A stretch of DNA of 64,000 bases. Origin: Thalia democratica. Lineage: Eukaryota. The first letter of the stretch is position 1. Each line of letters starts with the position of its first letter. The notes below the pieces were generated by a model. That model was not told the DNA's origin. It saw only the letters and a list, made by a program, of their open reading frames with translations, and ran no database searches. Made by a program: the position numbers and the translations under genes. The stretch is taken from the NCBI GenBank assembly GCA_965202585.1, contig OZ241832.1, positions 52,886,001-52,950,000 of the forward strand. The letters are read 5' to 3'. This document shows positions 1,717 to 62,624 of this stretch, one piece after another.

Positions 1717-4700
1717 ATGAAGTTAACTGTGAAGATCTCATTTCTCTGCATTATTGTTTTACACTGCCAAGGAGGTAAAAATTGTTTTATATATTACTTT
1801 TTTTCTTTTGATTTTTTTTTGGGCTTTCAAAAGAGTCTTTTTGTTCTTTAAACGCATTTAGATGTTTTAGAAACATTTTAAGTTCAAATTTTAATTTAAA
1901 AAAAAACTGTTTTTGCTAAATTTTCTTTTAACCTATTTATAAACAGATGACAAAATCAAAACTGATAAAGCTAAAGACTACTTATTGTATTAAAAAAACG
2001 TTTTACACAATATTTACTAACACAAATAGTTAGACGCATTTACTAGTGCAATTTTCATCTTAGCACCTCAAACAGCGATTGTTAAGTTCACAAAAAACTG
2101 TTTTAAAATGTTGAGTGTTTTATTTACAAAAAAAATTCCCAGTCGCCAATCCGAAAAAAGTAGTGACGTTCAGGAGGGGATTCACCCCCGGTGACGTCAT
2201 CACGTGGAAGGGAAAGCCGATGACGTCACGGTGCGTTCCCGCAAAACTTTTCTTGTTGTCACGTGACGGCAGGAAACTTTTCAACCTCAACGTAAAAAGC
2301 TGCATGCATCAGGTTATACTCAATTTCATTATTGTAATTAAATAATTTATTTTCATAAATTTTATCACTCACAATTTATTTGTAAATTAAAGGCGGTAAG
2401 TTATTATAAAAGCATTTAAACGATTGGTTGAGCTCAAAACGCGAGTTTATGATGTTTAAAACGCCAATACGCTTGCTGCAATAAAAACACTTAAAAGGTT
2501 ATTTAAGTTTATAATCGGTTGCTGGTTTAGGGATAAACGTAGCTAAAGCTTTAATATGTAAACAATTGCTTATTAACATATTTCAACACTTATCTAGCGT
2601 GTCAAGCATTAGTTTTGTATGATTTTGCAAAATACAATGTTTAGTTTAAAACCTCTGAACTGATTTTGTTCATTCTAACCTAATTTATTTTTTTTATGTG
2701 AAGCTATGTAAAAATAACTTAGATATCAAATTAAACTTTTCATAACCCAATCTACTCCACAACAAGGTTTCAGTCAGAACTGCTTCAAAGTCGAAACGAG
2801 CGAACGTCAAAACATGCTCAGTCAACAGCAGCTTGATACAAAAGGGAGCGGAATTCAACATTAAGATTCAGTTTCAGCAAAAACAGTACAACTTCTTCCT
2901 GGACAACAAGCTACTCTTCACCATTCCGTTAGTTCAACCGACCAAGTTTAATCTTGTTTTATTCAAAAGAATTCTGACTTAACTTACTGAATCGTTTTAG
3001 TTGAAGTAGCGGCTGAAGTTTATCAGTCATAACAGAAGTTCAAGTTTAATGCAACAGTCAAATTTTTTATCTTTTAGTTAAAACACCAAAATACGTTTGA
3101 CTAAATCGTTTCAGTCGAAATAACTGCCAAAATCTCGCTGTTTTTTATCAGTCAAAGTAAACTGATAATCTCAACTGTAATCGATTTCACATTTCACAAA
3201 CCGGCCCATCATTACCGCCTAATACACCTGCAATTATTTAAAATTACTCAAAATTTATTTGTAAACAAGCAGCGCCTCGCCCATTAAAATATTTCAGAAA
3301 CAATTTCTTATGCAAACTGCCGGCAAGCATCGTAAATATCGCTGTCTGTTGACAGTAGTAATTTGCGGCGGATTCTTGGAATATTTGAAATAATTTAAAT
3401 ATTTGTTGCTAAATTAAGTGGATATTGCTCCTTTGTGTCAAGGCCAGAGCTAAAAATAGATTTGAAATACAAATGTTAAACCGAGAGCGTTTGCCTAAAA
3501 AACACTTACTGATTGCAAGTTATTTTTGTGTGTTAAGGCAGCCGAACAACATTACATAATTTTTTACCAGGCATTTAGATGAAAAACAACTGAAAGAAGA
3601 AGCTAAAGTTGTGGTGTTGCACACAGAAGCAGCAAAAATACATCAAATGAATTTCTACGACTTCGGTTAGAAAAAATGTGTTTTTTCGATGGCTCAAAAT
3701 AGTTGCAGCTATCTTAATTTAAAATTAACAAATAACTTATTTCGATGCTCGAACAATTGTTAAAGTTTAGCAATGTTGTTAGCTTTTTTCTTTTTTTTCT
3801 TAACTCAGATAAAAAAAATGTTTTTGAGATTAAAATAGTATAAAAAGTATAAAAAATAAAGAAAAAATTAGATTTAACAATATCCGAATCTAAACTACTT
3901 AAGTGGTATACTTTTAATAGAAAATGTTTTTATATGAAACTTCATTTATAATGTTTTTATGTTCTTACACCATTTTGAGTATGTTGATTTGTTTAGCAAA
4001 AAATAAACAGTTGTTAGTATTTTTTAAGAAGCTTAACTGTTTGTTTTTACAGTATATAAAAAATCATTTATTCTATACAACCTATTAAAATTTACAGCAA
4101 AACATATTTCATCTGCCTTCAATCAACATGGAAATTATTTACAAGCGAGACACCAAGTTCATCATATTTCGAAAAGAGTAGTGAATGGTAGAAACGCAGA
4201 AATTACTTCCGCCCCTTGGCAGGTTAAGTATTCTTTTTAATGTTCTACTATTTTGGTTAACAGTTTGTATTGTTTTAAATCAACTTTTTTTTCTTTTTAA
4301 ATGAAAGTAGGTTCGTTGCTCTTAAAAGTATTTAGAGCATTTGAATAATGTTAAGTTTTAAAGCAACTAGTTTGCAAAAAATGACTGCTCTTTAAAATGC
4401 ATGACAAAATTAACACAATGACTAAATCAACGCAATTAAAATACTTGTATATTAAAACTTCAAAAACTTTTTAACAGGCGTCTTTGCATAAGAACAGGAC
4501 GCTTTCAAACTCGAGTTTCGAAGATTTGTTTTTCTGCGGGGCGACCCTGATTGACAGGTGTTGGCTGCTGACCGCTGCCCACTGTTTCCACAACCACAAC
4601 TACCAGTTTGTTGTATTTTTATTTATATTAACAATAAAACAGAAATTGTCTGTTCATAAATAATCGTGTAAGAACTTCCACAGACAATACTTGTTTCAAC

Positions 4701-7383
4701 TACACATAAACTATTAATATTTTCGCACATCGAGTCACATTTACATTAGATGTAAAACTCTGAAACCTGGCTTTTAAGCAACAGTTTTGTTAGGTTTAAC
4801 AATCTGACAGTTTCTATTAAATTTTAAGTTTAACATAGTCAAAAAATGTTTTTGGGAGAGGCAGTGCTAAATACTAAGTATATTTTTCTGAAGAAATAGT
4901 TTTTAGTTTATTAACTGTGCTTGTGTTCAGATATTTAACATCAAACCTCAAATAATTACGTATTTCATTAAAAAATATGTTAGCAGTTTCAACTTTTCAA
5001 TAACTTGCAACTAAAACTTAAATTATGACTAACCAGCTACACTAAACATAGATACAATAACAGTTTTGAATCTTCATGCTTACAAAACACCACATTTTTA
5101 ACAGTGACGTCAAAAACTACTGGGTCACAATCGGCAGCCAATACAAAGACGGTTATGACAAGAGTGCACAAAACTTGCAAATCAGAAGAATATACGTGCA
5201 TGGGCAATTCAACAGAGTTACGGGGGAAGCTTCCAGATTCGATATTTCCCTCATACATCTGAGAACTTGCGCTGTTTACAGGTTTGATTAACGGCAGTTA
5301 GTTTAAGCAGTTGTATAGTTTTATCACAGAAACTTCAACAGTTGTGTTAATTTTTATAACATTGATCTTGTAGTTTAATTAATAGAAAAATAGTTTTTTA
5401 CGTTATATAAAAATAGTAACTTCTGTAACATGAGACAAATTTTTAAATCAAAAATTGTACAAAAGTATATACCTTTTGATAGGCTTAAACTTATCTAAGT
5501 TTGTTATGTAAAAGATGCTCGAAAATTGAATTTTTTAATACTGCTAAAATTTGAAAGCATCAATATATTTAAGGCCCTAATTTCTTAACAAGGTTAAAAC
5601 CTTAATAGTATATTCAAAAACTTTATTAAAATTTGTTTATTAAAAAACTTTATTTTTACTAAAAGCATTTAAAATCTTTACGTTGTTTGGTTTTTTTTGT
5701 TTTAATTTTTAGGGGTTTAAAATAGTTTCAAACGGAAAAATAATTTTTATCAACTTTTGTGAAACAGTAATCTGTAACCTCAAGTCAGCTTTAAGTTTAC
5801 GCAGTGACAACAAACAACGTCATAAACATCAGTTTAAGATGGACTTTAGCTGCCGAGTCAAGCTGCATCGTAAAATTGTAACAAGCAGAATTTTAATCCG
5901 TTTCGGTCGGTTATTCGGTGTGTAAACACAGCTTATGCGGTGAATATTACAACCAGCTGTGTTTGTTATTGTCGTTAGTGCTTGGTAAAGTGTGTTTCAG
6001 CAGATTAGCGGGATTTGTTCAAGATAAATTTTTGTTGATTGTGCGTGTGTTGTGTACATAGTTGTTGGTATGCACAAATTGTTGTTGGAGATTTGTTGTG
6101 CTTTGTTTGCTAAAATCGTCAAAGTTGGCTAAAATTGTTTTTAAGACTTTTTTTGTTATTCTGCTTGGTAGTTTTACAAATATAAAAGCTGCTTTAACTG
6201 CTATCAAATAATAAACCTAAGTACAGTTTAAAACTACCAAGTCATTATCTCATAACCACTTGAACCGTTTTGCAACAGCGAACACGTGAAACCGGCAAAA
6301 CTGCCGTCAATGGAAGGTCAGTTTGTGGAAGGAGACAGCTGCAAGGTGACCGGATGGGGAGCCTACAAAGTCAAACAGAAACGTTTGAAATTTTACTTGT
6401 CGTGTGATATGTACTTGTAGATAAGTTGAAATCTTTGCTAAAACTTGAAGCCAAAGTATAATGCGTTAAGTGATACACAGAAACTTAAAAAAAAATATTT
6501 TTTGATTATTCGAATAAGTCAGTATACTGTTTTAGTTTAATAAAAAGATATAAAATCTTAATTATGTACTAATAACAGCAACGAGCGCAAAGTTCAGCTT
6601 CAAAAAGTTTGTCGACGATCTTGACTTTACGGAAGAACTGCAAGAAGGAAGAGTGAACATTCAACCGGCTGGTGATTGTTACAAGACACAAAAATACTTC
6701 AGTAAGAAGCATCAACTCTGCGCGAACGGGGTAAGTTGAAAAGTTGTTGTAAATTTCTTGTAAGGATTTGCTGTTTAGTTGATGGTAATATAAATTGTGT
6801 TTATTCTTTCTTACTAAAATTGTTTTTTGTAACTTAGATTAAAAAAATTAAAACAAGTAGTTTAGTTACTTTTGTCTCATATATTTATACTTTTTTTTAA
6901 TAAGTTAATTATTTTATACTTATATTTTTGCAGTGAATTGTTTATCAATAAACAAAAGTTAACTTAAATAATTACAAATCATATTTTTAATTGAAACAGC
7001 TTTTGAAAACAACAATTAACTGAAGACTGACATAACATTAAATTAACTTTTACAATATCAAAATGCATTTTAATAAATATGTGAATCTATATTACAACAA
7101 ACAGGTTGTGTACGACGAGCAAGGCAACCAACATCCAATCAAATCGGTGGACGCCTGCCTCAACGACAGCGGTGGCCCCCTAGTCTGCAGTCGCCTTAGC
7201 AACCACAATCGCCCCAACAACCGCTACGTGCTGTGGGGGGTGACCAGCCACGGTAAGAAGTGCGGAATAAGGGGAATTCCGGGGATTTACACGAAAGTTG
7301 CTACTTTTTATAATTGGATGTACGCGAAGATCGTGTTGAAAGACGAGGAGTTTGTAGGAGGGAGGCAATGTAACTACAGATAG
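1717..7383 (+). CDS. Secreted S1A (trypsin-like) serine protease with signal peptide and a divergent galectin-like N-terminal region, about 496 aa, 11 coding exons
   Basis: Hand-built exons, all GT-AG and phase-compatible: 1717-1774, 2143-2312, ~2767-2927, ~3115-3156, 3571-3665, 4098-4222, 4478-4605, 5105-5281, 6279-6382, 6579-6730, 7105-7383 (sum 1491 nt). Signal peptide MKLTVKISFLCIIVLHCQG. Activation site SKR|VVNGRNAEITSAPWQ. Triad motifs WLLTAAHC, FDISLIHL and DACLNDSGGP, plus CKVTGWG and PGIYTKV. Exons 3-4 have weaker boundaries (AAG acceptor, 42-nt exon). Confidence 0.9.
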
Positions 7384-25300: not shown

Positions 25301-26185
25301 ACCTTTCAATATACACTTATTATTCAAGCCTATTAAAATTTCAAGTCAGTATACTGATACAAAGTTAACTATTTAAAATAAAACTTCAATATCTCAAAAC
25401 AGCAACTATAGGCTGATGGTGTGCAGCTTAAATACATATAAAAATTATATTAAAAAAGATTTAATCTCTTTTAAATTTGGAATGCTATCAATTTGTTAAA
25501 CTTAACTGTTGAATGATTACCTTTGTCAAAAGCAAACTATTTTACGTCAACTATATATAAATGTCACAGCCTTATAACTTATAAATAGTACTACACAAAG
25601 TAAATACATTTCAGAGTAAGAACTCAGAAATGAAAAATGCGCACTTTTCAATTGCTTTTTTCTGAATTTTTCAATTTTCACACGGGTTTATATTAGGGAA
25701 AGTTTAGTGACGTGATGTATTACATTGTGAAAAAATTAAAAATGTTTATTAACAGTGTGGTATGACGTACAAAATTTGAAGATGAATAAGCATTAATAAT
25801 TCCAATTTTTAAAAAGAAAGTACAAAAATATCAATAAAAGTATTTTGAAAAAAAAAGAATAAAAAGCTGAACTAAGTAAAAAACAAATTATGACTAATAA
25901 CCATTATTTAAAAGCATACAAGTTTAAAAAAAGCATAAGTTTGCATAATGATAAATTAGATACTAAAAAGTCTTTCTGAAAGCTAAGACAACAATAAACC
26001 TTAATAAAACAAATCTTTCCTAACTGAAGTCAAAAAAGTATAAAAGTTATTACATCTCACAGTAAAAAATAATTGCTACACTTTTAAACAAAAATTTATA
26101 TAATTAAAACTCAACACTTAACAAAGTATTTTAAATTATTAGAAATAAAATAAAAACATTCAATACTTTTAGAAACAAACGAAAA

Positions 26186-28624
26186 CTACCTGTACCTGTT
26201 CTGCTTGTACAGATTGTTCCTCTTCGCCTTCAGCTGCAGCCTCCGCACCCGCAGCTCGGTGAAGCTGTCGTTGTCGGAGGAGTCGGAGAAGGCGCTGTAC
26301 TCCTCGTCCTTCACTGCAGCGATCAGCTTGCTCGGGTCGTAGTTCTCGCCGCCCTGCAGGCACTTCACGCAGATCTCGTTCATCTGGTGGTAGCACTGGT
26401 TGCAGTAGACGGCGCCGCAGCTCCTGTTGGCGCACGTCTTGAACTTGCGCACCTCGTCCGCCTTGCCCTTCGCGCCGCATATGTCGCAGCGGAACTTGTA
26501 GTTGCCTTTAATAAAGTCCACCAGCTTCTGCACCCTGCCGGAATTTTTCTTCTTCGGCGGCTCCAGCTTCTTGTTGCGCAAGTAGACGATGTCCGAGTGG
26601 AAGAAGGTCTCCCTTTCCTGCCATATTTTCGCGTGCAGGTACCTCACCCGCGCCCTCTCCTGCTCCGGGTGGAAGTAGGTCATGATGCTCCTCCTCAAGC
26701 GCAGGATGTACGCCTGCAGGAAGCACACCAGGTAGACGAACAAGTACAGGACCGCGCACAGTATGTACACGCTGTAGTCGGGCCCTTGAGGCTGCGGTAT
26801 GCACAAGCTGGGGTTCAGCTCGAACGCCGGATCGATCGCCAGCCTTTTGATCGAGTCCTTGATCTGGTTGAACAACTTGCTCATGATGCCGTTTTGAGAG
26901 TTTAACTCCGTGTTTATGTGGGCGAACACCTGTTTGAATTCTTTAAAGTTTAAAACGAATTTATTTGTGGTAACTGTTAATTTAAAAAAATCTAAGACAT
27001 ATTATGCAAGTTTTAATGCAATTTTTATGTATATTTAATTTAAATTATCAAATAATAATACTTATATATTGTTTTGTCACAAACAACTTTAACTTTGTAT
27101 AAAATAACTTGTACAGCTAAAATTAAAATATATAATATTTTTATAAGTTCAATAATACATTTTTTCTAATACCTGCAAAGCAAATTCTTCAACCGTATCC
27201 ACGCTGTCCACTTGACCATGAGTTGCAATCCTCAACAACGTTACGGCGTCTTGTATTATCAGCTCCTTCCAGTCTTCAAACACGGTTCCTTTCGACGAGC
27301 CGGTGCTGGCAATTTTACTGAAAGCAAACAGTATCTGGTAGAACATATAGTCGAGCAAGAACACAATGATGGAATAAATCAAGTGGACCGTCACCAAAAC
27401 CAATCCGATGCCCGTCAGCCCAATTTCGTGAGAAGACAGCTTTTTGCTCTTTGTTGCCACGTACTTGCCCGACTCTCTTTTGGTGAGAGGCAGCAAGTAG
27501 TTCTGGTGCCTGTGCAGCTTCCTGCAGTCAATTTTTAAAAAGTACGGGGTCAAGTACACGTTGTCAAAGTCGAGGGAGGTCAGGTACTTTCTCCTGTAAT
27601 GGAAGCCCGCGTAGAAAACCCACATGAAAGAAAACACCAACAAGGCATGCGCCCACCTGTACAAGTTGATGGCAAACCCAAAGTCTTCTTTGATTCCTTC
27701 TATTATGTGCTTTGCCAAGTCGTCATGTTGAGTTTCAAAGTTCACGTCAATGGACAGTTCGTGTACAAATTTAATGTCAAAATCAAAATCTTTTTTTATT
27801 TTTTTAAACACAGGTCCGACTGTTTTTATTATTCGGTTGTAAATTTTTTTTATAATCCAGTTTGGAACATAGCAGAATATATCCCAAAACAGTTCTTTAC
27901 ACTTTTTATCAATATTGTCCAAAAATGTGTGCGAACCCTCAATAGCTTCATTTACTTGATTGTAAGTATCAATAACTTTTTGAATATTTTGTTTTAACTC
28001 TTCCGCCAGACTGTGCATTCTTTGAATTGAGCCTTTCATTGATTCCATGACCGCTCGCTGACCGTCGTTCAAAACCTGCCTCATTCCGTTGCTGGCGTTC
28101 AAAGAGAGCTCCTCGGTGCAGGACAGGACCCTGGTCGTTTCATGGTAGTTGCTCACAATGGTTCTCATTGGTCCTCCTGTAAGCACAAGCGCCATGTAGA
28201 TCAGTATCAACGACCTTCCCTCCCGCGTGCAAAGGTACGGCAGGCTGAGCAGGACTCCGCTGAAGAGCGTGTCCGAGAAGCAGATGCTGGCGGCAACAAC
28301 AAAACCAACAGCTCCACTCACGTAAAGAGGGGTCAGGCTCCAGAACTTGTTGTAGCTGACAAAAAAGTACGCCAGGTGCTGCAGAAATATTCCAAAGAAG
28401 AACTTGAAGAACACCGTCTTGTTCCTTCTCTGCCTCAAATACTGCACTTTTTTCCTTGATACTTTAACGTTGTGGTCTGAGCCTTCTTCATATTTTTTCA
28501 AGAAAACAAACTTCTTTTGGTAAGCTAATTCATTGTTGCTTGACTCTGAGCTTGAGCTATACTCGCAGGGTTCTTCATTCACTGAGGTTTTTTTAACTTT
28601 CTTTCTGCACAAATTTTTAAACAT
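26186..28624 (-). CDS. DC-STAMP domain-containing multipass membrane protein with C-terminal C4C4 RING (DCST1/DCST2, SPE-42, Sneaky family), about 731 aa
   Basis: Exon 28624-27173 and exon 26929-26186 are joined by a phase-0 GT-AG intron (CAG|GTATTA ... AAACAG|GTG). Motifs TREGRSLILIY, YRRKYLTSLDFDNVYLTPYFLKID...LLPLTKRE, CIPQPQGPD, RLRRSIMTYFHPEQERARVRYL and CDIC...CANRSCGAVYCNQCYHQMNEICVKC. Residues are a mix of DCST1-like and DCST2-like, so no symbol is given. An upstream phase-0 coding exon cannot be excluded. Confidence 0.9.
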
Positions 28625-31185: not shown

Positions 31186-33271
31186 TAGTGATTTACCATG
31201 TCCAATATCCAGATAATGCCTTTTCAAATCCAAATCCAGTCAGATACTAATTTGAAAACATTAGCAGATCTGATTGGATACTAATACTAACCGGATCTAA
31301 TTTAAATTGAGATCTGGTTCCCGTAGGATTCTAACTTAAATAAAAGTTTTGGATTCGGCTGGAAGTTGATCACTTTTCTGATTCCATCTAATTCACAAAA
31401 ATTTCTCAGACGTGACAACTTAAGATGTAGATTGAGACATGTCAGATGTTTAAGTAATGTGTACAAATAGAATTTATATAGTAATTGACAAAGATTGGTA
31501 TGTAAAATATCAAATTTAAACAAACAATTTGCTTTAGGTATTTGACAAAAATATATTCCAACTAAGTTAGAACAACACAAAACATTACGACAACATGGTT
31601 TTTTATCAGTAGATATTAATTTGAATAGCCATTTTTACACATGATTTTATGTCAAAATCTTACAGTTTGGTTTAGTAAAAATATGATACTAAATTTTATA
31701 AAAGTTTTGTAACATTAAACTTTGCGGGCCTGACACTTCTATTGCAAGCTGGTCATTTTCATCTGTGGGCCAAATTTGATTGTAAATCAAAAAACGGTTG
31801 GGGACTGGTCATTTTAACTCTTCGGGCTGTACATTGCCCACTCCTATTCTATACCAATAAAAACAACTTAAACATGAATGACAACAAATTACTACTAGTC
31901 ACAACAGGTTGATCCACTGTATTGACTTTCCCCTTTCCCTTCTTACCTCAAAAATAATGTTAAAGAGCAGCTAAAATTTAATTTCAAAAAGCATATCTCA
32001 ATCCAGACTGATCAAAAATGTGATTCTCATATATTGTCACCAGAGAAAGCAAAACCACAACCCTCAGTAAATTTTAATCCAAAGAAGTTATCAACTTGAT
32101 ATTCTTTCTTTTAAAAAAAATCAAACACAGCTACACAGTAGAACGAGCAACAGGATTATAATATGAAGAAATTGAGCAGAAATAAAGGGCTTTTTTGCTA
32201 CAGAGAATTTGAATGCAGAAACTGAAGAAAATCAAGTCTTAAACTGATGGAACTTTAACACTACAAAGTACCCATATCTTACCAGCTTTGCAAGGAAATA
32301 TTTATCACTACACTATAATCTTCTGTGTATTCTGAAGATGGTAATTTGTATGAAGAAAAGGTTATTGATTACTTCCAAAGACCAAAAAAAAACTTTATTT
32401 TTCCACCACAACTAAAAAAACAAGAATAGTCTTTTGTAGGATAAAAAAAACATTTTTGCATTTGTAGTTTGTTTTATATTTTCAAACAGTTGCTAAGTTA
32501 GGTTAAGTTATATTTCTTTTTTGTAATGGTAAAAGTGTAATCCTAAGTGAGATTTAAAAACCTTTTATTACAAATGTAATCCCTATTCTATTTTAGGCTT
32601 TTACTATAGTTAGTATTATATTTCTATTTTTCACGGCTCCATGTTATTTTCATTTACATTTTGTTTTAAAAATGCAACTGTTTATGTTCTAAAGTTTATG
32701 GTCACAATAAAAACTAGCTCTTAAGCTAAACATAAAATGTTAACATTGTTGGTGATTTGTTTTCTGCTTTAAGCATTTATTAAGTCGATGATTTATTTAT
32801 TTTGCATAACAAAAATAAAAGTTAATTGTTAATTTTGCTTGCATGGATATCAAAATATTGAAACTAAGTTCTTGTGTATGTAACTTGAATTTTTTAGCAA
32901 CACATTCGTTTTTTTGTTTGCTTTTAAAATAAATAGTTTTAAATAATAATGTATTTATTTGTTATCAGTTAAAAATATTGTTCAAACTTAATTTACTAAA
33001 TGAGTAATAATATAATAAGTATTTATTATTTATAAACTTGTATTGTATTTACATTACAAGCAGCTTAAATCTTTAGAATTCAAATTATCAAAATATTTGA
33101 ATTTGGACTCTGATTAGGCCAAATCCAAATTTTAAAACTCAGATTTGGATTTAGATTCAGTTAAATCCTAATTTGAAAATAAGATTCAGGTTTGGCTGAA
33201 TTCTAATTTGAAAATAAGACTTGGATTTGGATCTGGCCAAATCCAAAATTTTTGGGTTTGGTAGATTACTA
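31186..33271 (+). mobile_element. Old, deleted relative of the 20805-23882 hAT element in the opposite orientation
   Basis: TIR-like ends TAGTGATTTACC (31186) and GGTAGATTACTA (33271), with decayed GGATCCGG-type subterminal repeats. Dimerisation-domain remnant WNFNTTKYPYLTSFARKYLS at ~32245-32310, and the downstream sequence matches the reverse complement of ~21350-21550. No TSD was recovered. Confidence 0.65.
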
Positions 33272-43144: not shown

Positions 43145-46100
43145 TTTACCTAAAAACTTTGAAACGGTCTTTTAGAATGAAATTTCAAAGAATATTCTGT
43201 TTAAAAAGTTAAGCTGTTTTTAAAATATAACTTAAATGTATCAACTTACAACATTTAGATGTTATAAGAAAATAGTACTTGTTGTTCTTATATATATGTT
43301 AATAATAAGTATTTTAAAACATCAAATACTTATTATGTGTGTAATTTTATTAAAACTTTTAGAGAATAAACATCTAAAAACTAGTTAAAAAATAATATTT
43401 TTTCGGAAAATTTAAGCTTTATCTATGTTATTTAGCCTTCAAAAAATTAAATTCTATTTTTAAATAGTACTGATCTAAAAATAAACCTTGTATTATTGGA
43501 AATGGCTTAAAAGTTTTAAAATTGTTAGGATAATAACAATAAAACATGGAAATGATTGCTTATAACAACATTGTTAGGAGAAAAGTTTGAGCTTATAGTT
43601 GTCATAACTAAAGCTAAATAAAGTATATTATATGACGCTCAAGAACTTTATATAAAAATGTAAACTCATCGAGTGTATGTAATAAACTATTAATTTGTTT
43701 TTTAAAATCACATTACTATTTAATTCAATTAAACTAGATTTTAGAGACATCTGATTTTTAAATGCTACAGTCCTAACTTACTAAAATCTCTTTTACTAAT
43801 ACTAACTTTACTCTAATTATTAACTGAAAGCATATATTTGAATTTAGTTTTAAAAAAAACTATAGTAATGTTTTGGAGTATTAAGTGAACTTTTAAAACT
43901 AAAACAACCAAAAAATAAGAATATTTTTACTATAAGATAAACATGTTTATTAATAATACATCTGGAATTCGATTTTAGTTGAACGACAACTAGACTCGCC
44001 TACACTCAGGTCAAACCTCAAAACAGTTGCTTAGTATAAAGTATATTTAATAGACTATAATCTAAAAGATTACTAAATGCTGTTATAAAAATAAGAGTAA
44101 AAAAGATAAAAAGCTTGAGATTACTTTAATTCAAAATTAAAAACCTTTGATTTTTTTTCAAACAACTGAATAAGATTAAGAATAAACGTTTTCTTTAAAG
44201 ACATTGTTATGATTTGTTATTGTTTGATTAAACGTTTTACTTTGTTAATAACGTAATATAATGATACTGATTACTTAAGCTATAGTTTATTTTCAAGATT
44301 ACCAATATCATAACTAAACTATTTAGATATGGTTTAGTAAAAATTGTTTAATGAAAGTTATACTTTTATAAGAATTATAATTACCGCTTATTTAAAAATC
44401 ATTAAACAAAAAACCTTAAAAACTATCATAAAATATGGTTAAATAATTTGCTCTTAATTAAACACAAAATAACAAAATTTTACACTTGTTGATATGATAA
44501 ATGTAGTTACTATACTTTCGTTGTTTAAAGTTAAGAAGCAAGTAACTTGACTAAATTAAAACTTAGCCATGTTACACAGTTTTAAGCTAAAAATTTTTCA
44601 ATTTTACTAAATTAAAACTTGAATTTATATCATTCTGTTTACTAAAATCAAAACAGTAGTTAAAAACTTATAAGTGTTCTCTTTTTTTGATTTTTATCTT
44701 TCGTTTCTCATCTATATATTAAAAGTGATATGTGCTGTTAGGAGTGATAACAATATTTTGTTTTTTTTTTTCTTCAAAAATCCTAATAAGAGCTTTAGAT
44801 TAAGTGTACTACATTAGTTTAAGATTGAATACATGTTATTTTTATAATTTAACAAATAGTTTAAAAGTTATAAGCTTTATGGAAGCTTATTTCAATACAA
44901 TTTTGCCCTTTTTTTTCTGCTATATAATTATATTGTGTTATTACTTTTTATTAATGTGCCTAAACTTAATCTTCTATCAATTGGTCTGGCCCGTCTTTCG
45001 CTTATTTTATTGAAATTAAGAATTCTTTAATTTGAATAAAATTTTTCCCTTTTTATGTTTGTAAATATCATTTTTAATTCAACCTATTTATCTATTTCGT
45101 TCCGAAACCTGTGACTTTAAATATTGCACAAGTACAACTACTCATGTTTTGTTTGTTTTCATTATTATCTTGGCTTGTTTTTTTGTTATTATTTCATTCT
45201 TTTGGAGTAAGTTTTTTGATTATCTAAACAGTTAAGTTGGCTTTTTTAATTTGTTAAGTTCTAATGAAAATAAAAGGCAACAACACTGTCTCCGTGCTCA
45301 ATTTAATGATAATTTTGTTTGTAATATATTTTTTAAATTTTACACTAGTTACATGCGTTTAGAAAAGTGAAGTTATAGAGAACTAATTAGATGTTTTATT
45401 GCATTTTTTTCTTTAAACGTTTAGATAAATGAACAAAATATAGTTATTTTACATACACACCAGAGGCAGATCCAGACTTGTTTCCTAGTGCATGTGCTAT
45501 ACTTGAAATAGCTGAATAAGATAAAAAAATTAGTTAAAATTATTAATTGAGGACGTTTGTAATTCAAATACTTGTTGTTGTAGAACTGCTTGTGCTTTCA
45601 TACTAAAGCTTTAAATGTTGAATATAGCCAACCAAATACTGTAACAATATGTAAACTTAAATTAAGCACATTTCTTTTGTTTTATGAGTACCTTGAGATG
45701 ATCAGTCGTAACAAATTTTAAATTATAAGTCCTCAATAATTTCATAATTAGTTTATAATTTATGAGAGCTTTCGTGTGAAAGGAAATCCTTTAACTCGTT
45801 TGCATAAAGTTTGTAGTTGAAAATGCTATTATAAATAATTAAAGTTAAAATAAATGTGTAGATGTCTGTAAGATTTATCTTTAAAACATGATAAAAGAAA
45901 TTATTTATATTATGAAAAAATAATCATTAAAAGTTTTTTTAACCAGTTGTTTGCTGTTTTCAAATTTAACAAAAACTTATATATAGCAAAAGCCCTTCAC
46001 AACGCTTCATGCCAACTAAAATAACATATGTTGTAGACGAGTCTTTTATATTTGTTTATATGCACTACTTGCGCTAGATTTTTGCCTTTCTAGCCACCAA

Positions 46101-47104
46101 TTTAAAAAAATGCTTTTTCCAGTTGCGGGTTTATAAGAAATAAAATACCATTTTTGAAATATTCATAAACATTTAACCTTTTGCAACACTTTTTTAAGTT
46201 TTAAAGTTTTGCGATGCATTGAAATGAAACAATTTAATTTCAAAAGTAAAAAAGTTTTGCTCTTTGTATGAAAAGTACTCAAAATATGAATAGTTTGTAG
46301 AGCTTATTTGCGCAAAATGTAACAATCTTTTAATTGAAAATATAAATTTAAAGATGTTGAGTAAATTTATAAACGAACTATTTAAACTAAAAGTTATCTT
46401 ATTATTGTACTTTTGTATATTTTCAACATCTCTAATATACTTTATAAGTTAAAGCTAAAGAGGAGATTGGTTTTAGTATATTTTTTCTACCTCTATTTTC
46501 AATAATAAACTTTAGTTTATAAAAAGCGTCATAGTTCTTTAGAACGTTTAATCTAACATGTTAGTTAAATTAATTATGAAAAACAATTTTGATTCACCGA
46601 AAATATTGCTCATAAAAATACTCATTTGTGTTCAACTAAAACGATTAAAAAATCAAACTTCTATTTGAGTAATTTTTAATTCTTAGTAATCAATTACTAA
46701 CTTATATAAATTAAGCAAATAAAAATTAGCATCTTAAACAAATGCTTTAAAACGTATAAAAATACAGTATTCGAAAACATAACCAAGTTAAAAAATTATT
46801 TTAAAGCATACTTTTAAAAACCTTAGGCACTTCATTTTTAGCTCAACGTATGTTTAGCAAACGTATAACCAACTAAATTCAATAAAATCAACTCAGTACA
46901 AGAAAATATAAGTAATTTTAAACTTTAAAATCGACAAATTAAGTAGAGCAATCTTTTTAAAGTTTCTAGTACAAAGTTCTCGCTAAAAATAAATTAAACA
47001 CCAGCCTTGTTTTATAACTATGAGTACTAAACCACTTCGTTCAAAAATCAAATAGCTTTCTGAAACAAACTACAAAAGGAAACAAAATTGTTCACAGAAA
47101 AGCC

Positions 47105-62624
<15,520 letters not shown>

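Follow-up and report, generated by a model that had tools for sequence, protein, structure and literature searches.

We analyzed a stretch of 64,000 nucleotides from the genome of Thalia democratica (C8:52886001-52950000, hereafter the window, to whose positions all feature coordinates refer), in which a gene for a putative secreted protease with an unusual N-terminal module occupies positions 1717-7383 of the plus strand. Joining of reading frames through GT-AG introns gave 10 exons with an intact open reading frame (ORF) and a predicted product of 482 amino acids, and all splice junctions of this protease gene were GT-AG and in phase. The exons are given below, with slashes marking splice junctions or the predicted cleavage site; three paralogs, termed c5a, c5b and c7, are described further on.

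1717-1774, plus strand: exon 1, carrying the start codon and a putative signal peptide of ~19 amino acids (hydrophobic N-terminus); donor G/GTAAAA in phase 1, the phase that the junction into exon 2 has in every paralog.
2143-2312, plus strand: exon 2, starting in phase 1; first ~56 amino acids of the N-terminal domain (N-domain), with the motif G..D.I.W.G, placed at galectin strands S1-S4 by alignment.
2767-2927, plus strand: exon 3; middle ~53 amino acids of the N-domain, with VRT...F.I.I....Y.F..N.KL.F, placed at galectin strands S5-F5 by alignment.
2767 and 2927, plus strand: junctions of exon 3, an unusual acceptor aacaag/ in phase 0 and a donor CC/GTTAGT in phase 2, both conserved in the paralogs.
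3571-3665, plus strand: exon 4, phase 2 to phase 1; final ~31 amino acids of the N-domain, with two strand-like stretches aligned to galectin strands S2 and F1.
4098-4222, plus strand: exon 5; a His-rich, Cys-free linker and the zymogen activation site KR/VVNG (predicted cleavage between the codons at 4175-4180).
4478-4605, plus strand: exon 6; protease domain with TAAHC and the catalytic His at 4580-4582; Pfam Trypsin, 33.5 bits.
5105-5281, plus strand: exon 7; protease domain with the catalytic Asp in FDISL at 5241-5243.
6279-6382, plus strand: exon 8; protease domain with Lys at 6298-6300, the position of the paralogs' interchain Cys122 (P[VI]CLP).
6579-6730, plus strand: exon 9; protease domain with the Cys168-Cys182 loop.
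7105-7383, plus strand: exon 10; Asp189 at 7150-7152, Asn at position 193 (7162-7164) and the catalytic Ser195 at 7168-7170; Pfam Trypsin, 44.3 bits; stop codon TAG.

The peptide strings that the first-pass annotation had quoted from 2143-3665 were all present on the plus strand where it had placed them. Its end of exon 3 at 2927 was exact, with the CC/GT donor and its phase conserved in three paralogs; an alternative exon 3 donor at 2945 (AA/GTTTAA) was ruled out by this same conservation. An equivalent of exon 4 with the same phases is likewise conserved in c5a, c7 and c5b. Seven of the gene's nine donors (at 2313, 2928, 3666, 4223, 4606, 5282 and 6383) read GTT, with T at intron position +3 (GTTATA, GTTAGT, GTTAGA, GTTAAG, GTTTGT and, twice, GTTTGA), and GTT donors were also seen at several paralog junctions (GTTAGT, GTTTAT). 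In most animal donors, position +3 is A or G. The preference for GTT may be a genome-wide peculiarity of the donor consensus in this species.

The C-terminal part of the product is a trypsin-type domain of the S1A family. The scores of exons 6 and 10 both lie above the Pfam Trypsin (PF00089) cut-off of 20.6 bits, and the best PDB matches of exon 10 were factor I, TMPRSS13, hepsin, enteropeptidase and plasma kallikrein. The His57/Asp102/Ser195 triad is intact, with TAAHC, FDISL and NDSGGP mapped to it, and the activation site provides a classical (I/V)V.G N-terminus. Asp189 predicts specificity for Arg and Lys. Gly193 of the oxyanion hole is not kept, its place being taken by the Asn noted above. 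A Cys specific to the family lies in the C-terminal tail, which exon 10 also encodes.

Between the signal peptide and the activation site lies the N-domain, which comprises ~140 amino acids encoded by exons 2-4. The first-pass annotation had recognized in it the strand pattern of a galectin carbohydrate-recognition domain (CRD). Exon 3 of the window gene gave two matches in all in a Pfam scan, to Gal-bind_lectin (PF00337; E-value 0.047, profile positions 77-106 of 132) and, better, to DUF6250 (E-value 0.013). Exon 3 of c5a had PF00337 as its sole match (E-value 0.041, profile positions 81-105); Pfam scans of the other window exons, of c7 and of c5b gave no match to this family. Of ten size-matched control ORFs taken from the window, none matched galectin and two gave some match (E-values 0.02-0.04). 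In an Atlas language-model search, exon 3 of the window gene lay nearest to three galectin clusters, at 0.82-0.84 (trusted level, 0.9).

For profile tests, the four N-domains were spliced from coordinates and compared with a galectin profile made from 93 complete CRDs, taken from 127 vertebrate galectin-3 database sequences. With all filters off, the hidden Markov model (HMM) of galectin-3 scored the window domain at 12.2 bits and the other three at 9.7, 4.3 and 1.8 bits; these scores were reached, in the same order, by 1, 0, 5 and 92 of 3000 shuffles each. When a family profile of the four domains was aligned to the galectin profile with hhalign, the score was 29.5 (P 3e-4) over 94 colinear columns. 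None of 300 column shuffles reached this value (12.5 +/- 2.3, maximum 20.5), and the reversed query scored 16.6. The window domain alone scored 18.5, as opposed to the 29.5 of the four-sequence profile. At relaxed thresholds, the alignment spanned the whole galectin profile, covering 135 columns with two small indels. Aligned exon by exon, residues 10-24 of exon 2 fell on columns 10-24 and residues 24-48 of exon 3 on columns 80-104, on one diagonal, with neither exon significant singly; exon 4 alone gave no galectin signal. Among the four copies, the F4 strand of c5b (F.I.YNG) comes closest to that of galectins.

The most serious alternative is that the module is a beta-rich domain peculiar to this lineage and without kinship to galectins, in which case the likeness would come from shared strand periodicity and a handful of hydrophobic residues and glycines. 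Every galectin signal is sub-threshold, and a series of results counts against a galectin assignment or in favor of such a domain. The exon 3 scores of the window gene and c5a (13.6 and 13.8 bits) did not reach the PF00337 gathering cut-off of 22.1 bits, and DUF6250 ranked slightly above the galectin family on the former. Taken singly, exon 2 and c5b exon 3 gave no galectin signal in Pfam and noise in Atlas, and exon 4 was equally silent. The hhalign probability was 40%, and a P of 3e-4 by itself fails a library-wide correction. Column shuffling erases strand periodicity and is thus a lenient null that any beta-rich domain may beat, while the galectin profile, being restricted to vertebrate galectin-3, is narrow. 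A PDB sequence search with exon-level family profiles and single exons returned no galectin, and AlphaFold2 gave exon 3 alone a predicted local distance difference test score (pLDDT) of 49. Finally, the galectin hypothesis was derived from the same sequence as that on which it was tested.

Other searches are to be read alongside these. Exon 3, the only piece that was searched in this way, had no relative among 1.8 billion representative proteins by phmmer, which also fits a lineage-specific domain. Two ankyrin-repeat matches of this exon were spurious, as they summed the short repeat 'L.EKGADIN' against the exon's 'LIQKGAEFN'. Split-domain co-folding of the three exon peptides gave a score of 0.02, which speaks for neither view. 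A look for canonical galectin genes in the same genome, by PF00337, the HFNPRF codon pattern and a 45-amino-acid galectin-3 probe, returned nothing usable with a first-look filter that is probably insensitive to short exons.

Several observations nevertheless argue against an unrelated beta-rich domain. Exon 3 of the window gene and that of c5a, which are 19% identical, both picked out PF00337 in scans of the full library, and at matching columns. The domain is as long as a CRD and aligns with one over its full extent, interrupted by no more than two tiny indels. The score climbs from the single sequence to the family profile, and the trypsin domain of the window gene, itself beta-rich, scored only 11.8 against the galectin profile. 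We therefore consider an unrelated domain unlikely, and that the N-domain has a galectin-type fold appears probable from these comparisons. The pattern reported in the first-pass annotation thus stood as regards CRD length, colinear alignment, the direction in which Pfam and Atlas pointed and the margin of hhalign over shuffled, reversed and trypsin controls, but not as regards the Pfam threshold.

A search of the 802-Mb assembly with exon 3, and then with exon-level profiles, revealed that exactly four loci share this architecture, i.e., the window gene, c5a and c5b in tandem on C5, and c7 on C7. At all four, exons resembling exons 2, 3 and 4 are followed by trypsin exons, with identical intron phases (exon 2 starting in phase 1, exon 3 running from phase 0 to 2 and exon 4 from phase 2 to 1). 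The c5a copy has a complete catalytic triad and, as does c5b, the usual GDSGGP. In the c5b copy (C5:36102000-36108500), the His57 and Ser195 motifs are still present; the sequence KGR PVSLEN takes the place of R/(I/V)V.G in its activation region, and its activation may be non-classical. The c7 copy (C7:14525300-14535100) has an in-frame TAA in exon 2, Ser in place of His57 and Asn in place of Ser195. Two readings fit this copy: it may be a pseudogene of recent origin, or a pseudo-protease that is catalytically dead and whose exon 2 ends differently. The paralogs possess a CG-type linker Cys and Cys122, which form the tether of two-chain mosaic proteases; in the window copy both of these cysteines are gone, the linker being Cys-free and Lys occupying 6298-6300. 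As read from these features, the four copies would show stages of change, from c5a (tethered and active) through c5b (tether and catalytic motifs present, activation site atypical) and the window gene (tether lost) to c7 (dead, with a stop).

A decayed version of the last protease exon lies inverted on the minus strand of the window, at positions 64-177; it is 50% identical to residues 441-482 and is interrupted by two in-frame stops and a gap. It has no further exons beside it, nor were any present in the 10 kb upstream; it looks like the remnant of a partial duplication.

Since three paralogous loci on two other chromosomes share the domain order and the intron phases, the fusion of the N-terminal module to the protease is almost certainly real, and the proposal that the two form a single gene was borne out by the same architecture at four loci. 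The N-domains of c7 and c5a are 60% identical and have a ratio of non-synonymous to synonymous substitution rates (dN/dS) of 0.25 at a dS of ~1. In exons 3-5, the haplotype differences seen in DNA runs comprised 6 synonymous changes and 8 non-synonymous ones, the latter conservative, and none introduced a stop or shifted the frame. Contigs of a second organism carry a 12-base in-frame deletion in exon 10 that keeps the frame. These comparisons indicate constraint on the coding sequence.

These data bear on the alternative of an artefactual gene model or a dead gene, in which mRNAs would not link exons 2-4 to the protease exons, or the locus would be an unexpressed pseudogene. What speaks for this is that the three sequencing runs that matched the stretch were all DNA contigs, which covered introns and showed no splice joints, with no RNA run among them, a point that also weighs against the fused product that we propose. 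The stop codon and the lost catalytic His and Ser of c7, as well as the decayed fragment at 64-177, point the same way. The 10-exon ORF of the window gene is, however, intact with canonical splice sites; its phases recur at all four loci, which lie on three chromosomes; exon 5 by itself offers neither a start codon nor a signal peptide, and dN/dS is low. The other haplotype and the contigs of the second organism keep the frame, the exon 10 deletion included, and the two partner cysteines were lost together. An artefact or a dead gene is accordingly very unlikely.

With regard to the sugar-binding site, the galactoside contacts of galectins (H, N and R of HxNPR; N; W, E and R of WGxExR) correspond in the end-to-end hhalign alignment to L, N, N, T, A, K and C in the window protein. 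Only one of these seven canonical contacts, the first Asn, is kept and six are replaced, in agreement with the loss of the HxNPR and WGxExR residues reported earlier. Judged by this alignment, the beta-galactoside site is gone. That the module is a working lectin which still binds beta-galactosides through a remodelled site, as the single retained Asn and a Trp at the stacking position of c7 might be taken to indicate, is highly improbable given the replacement of His, Arg, Asn, Trp, Glu and Arg by Leu, Asn, Thr, Ala, Lys and Cys in the window protein and the lack of conservation of these contacts in the paralogs.

Compared with galectins, the module has the size of the ~135-amino-acid CRD (PF00337), to which its profile aligns colinearly from end to end, and it conserves two N-terminal glycines as well as the F.I.I ... 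F.V.VN-type pattern of strands F3 and F4. It differs in lying below the Pfam threshold and in the six of seven galactoside contacts that are replaced. Furthermore, the window protein has a signal peptide and is fused to a protease, whereas classical galectins lack a signal peptide; the intron positions within the module also differ from those that we take to be typical of chordate galectin CRDs. Galectins with degenerate sugar sites are known, such as GRIFIN, the galectin-related protein LGALSL and galectin-10. The module appears to resemble these proteins, but is not classed here as a galectin because it failed both the Pfam threshold and the binding-site test.

The protease, for its part, has the layout of mosaic S1A proteases such as factor I, TMPRSS13/hepsin, enteropeptidase, plasma kallikrein, the MASPs and horseshoe-crab factors C and G, all of which combine one or more N-terminal modules with an Arg/(I/V)V.G site and a trypsin domain; the tether between a linker Cys and Cys122 is moreover kept in the paralogs. 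Unlike in those proteases, the module is not a CUB, LDLa, SRCR, kringle, sushi, clip, apple or C-type lectin domain, and the window copy lacks the tether cysteines, has Asn193 and bears a single module. Jelly rolls of the ConA-like/galectin type do serve as accessory modules of enzymes, as in the MAM domain of enteropeptidase and the galectin domain of plant GT31 galactosyltransferases. These precedents differ in that they concern other enzymes or another jelly-roll family. We found no description of a galectin-trypsin architecture in the literature searched, and the combination is not known from named protease families. The main text of a survey of the 'tryptome' (PMC6767649) makes no mention of galectin or lectin modules.

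Taken together, the data make it likely that the window gene encodes a secreted zymogen composed of a signal peptide, a beta-sandwich of ~140 amino acids derived from a galectin CRD, a 26-amino-acid Cys-free linker ending in KR/VVNG and an S1A domain, as deduced from the gene model. Asn193 might lower the activity of the window copy, a point that counts against this reading. In the mechanism that we propose, a trypsin-like convertase would cut after Lys-Arg to activate the zymogen, and the active protease would have trypsin-like specificity through Asp189. The module, presumably no longer able to bind beta-galactosides, would act as a targeting or regulatory prodomain; it may bind another glycan or a protein, and may position or restrain the protease until cleavage by the convertase. 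The coordinated loss of the linker Cys and Cys122 suggests that the module of the window copy is released upon activation. It is also possible that a different bond holds it, via the six cysteines of the window protein that lack an assigned partner (50, 73, 93, 231, 301 and 479).

Elsewhere in the window, which is AT-rich (GC content ~0.3), GC-rich islands at 46000-50000 and 26000-28000 reach 0.41-0.51, as compared with ~0.28 around them, and AT skew is strong at 48-50 kb. Across the whole window, no match to an Rfam family was obtained. One of the control ORFs, at 32248-32412 on the plus strand, gave a weak match to a hAT transposase dimerization domain (E-value 0.043) and is possibly a transposon remnant.

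The scope of these findings is modest, since they concern a single genome and a small family within it. In tunicates, which form the sister group of vertebrates, immunity is innate and lectin-based. Because these animals rely on such immunity, it is plausible that the combination of a recognition module with a protease is a lineage-specific immune, digestive or fertilization device. A bolder proposal, which we regard as speculative and rather doubtful, is that the four loci represent a tunicate-restricted family of single-chain lectin-protease sensors, in which a module retargeted to a non-galactoside ligand delivers or gates a trypsin-like protease. Were this true, a single chain would combine recognition and proteolysis, which in the lectin pathway of complement are divided between mannose-binding lectin (MBL) or ficolin on the one hand and the MASPs on the other; the ligand could then be a microbial glycan, a self glycan or a protein. 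Mosaic serine proteases owe their specificity to non-catalytic modules, of which a small and well-documented set is known. One derived from a galectin would be an addition to this set, and would represent a cytosolic-type lectin fold that was recruited into a classically secreted zymogen after the loss of its sugar site.
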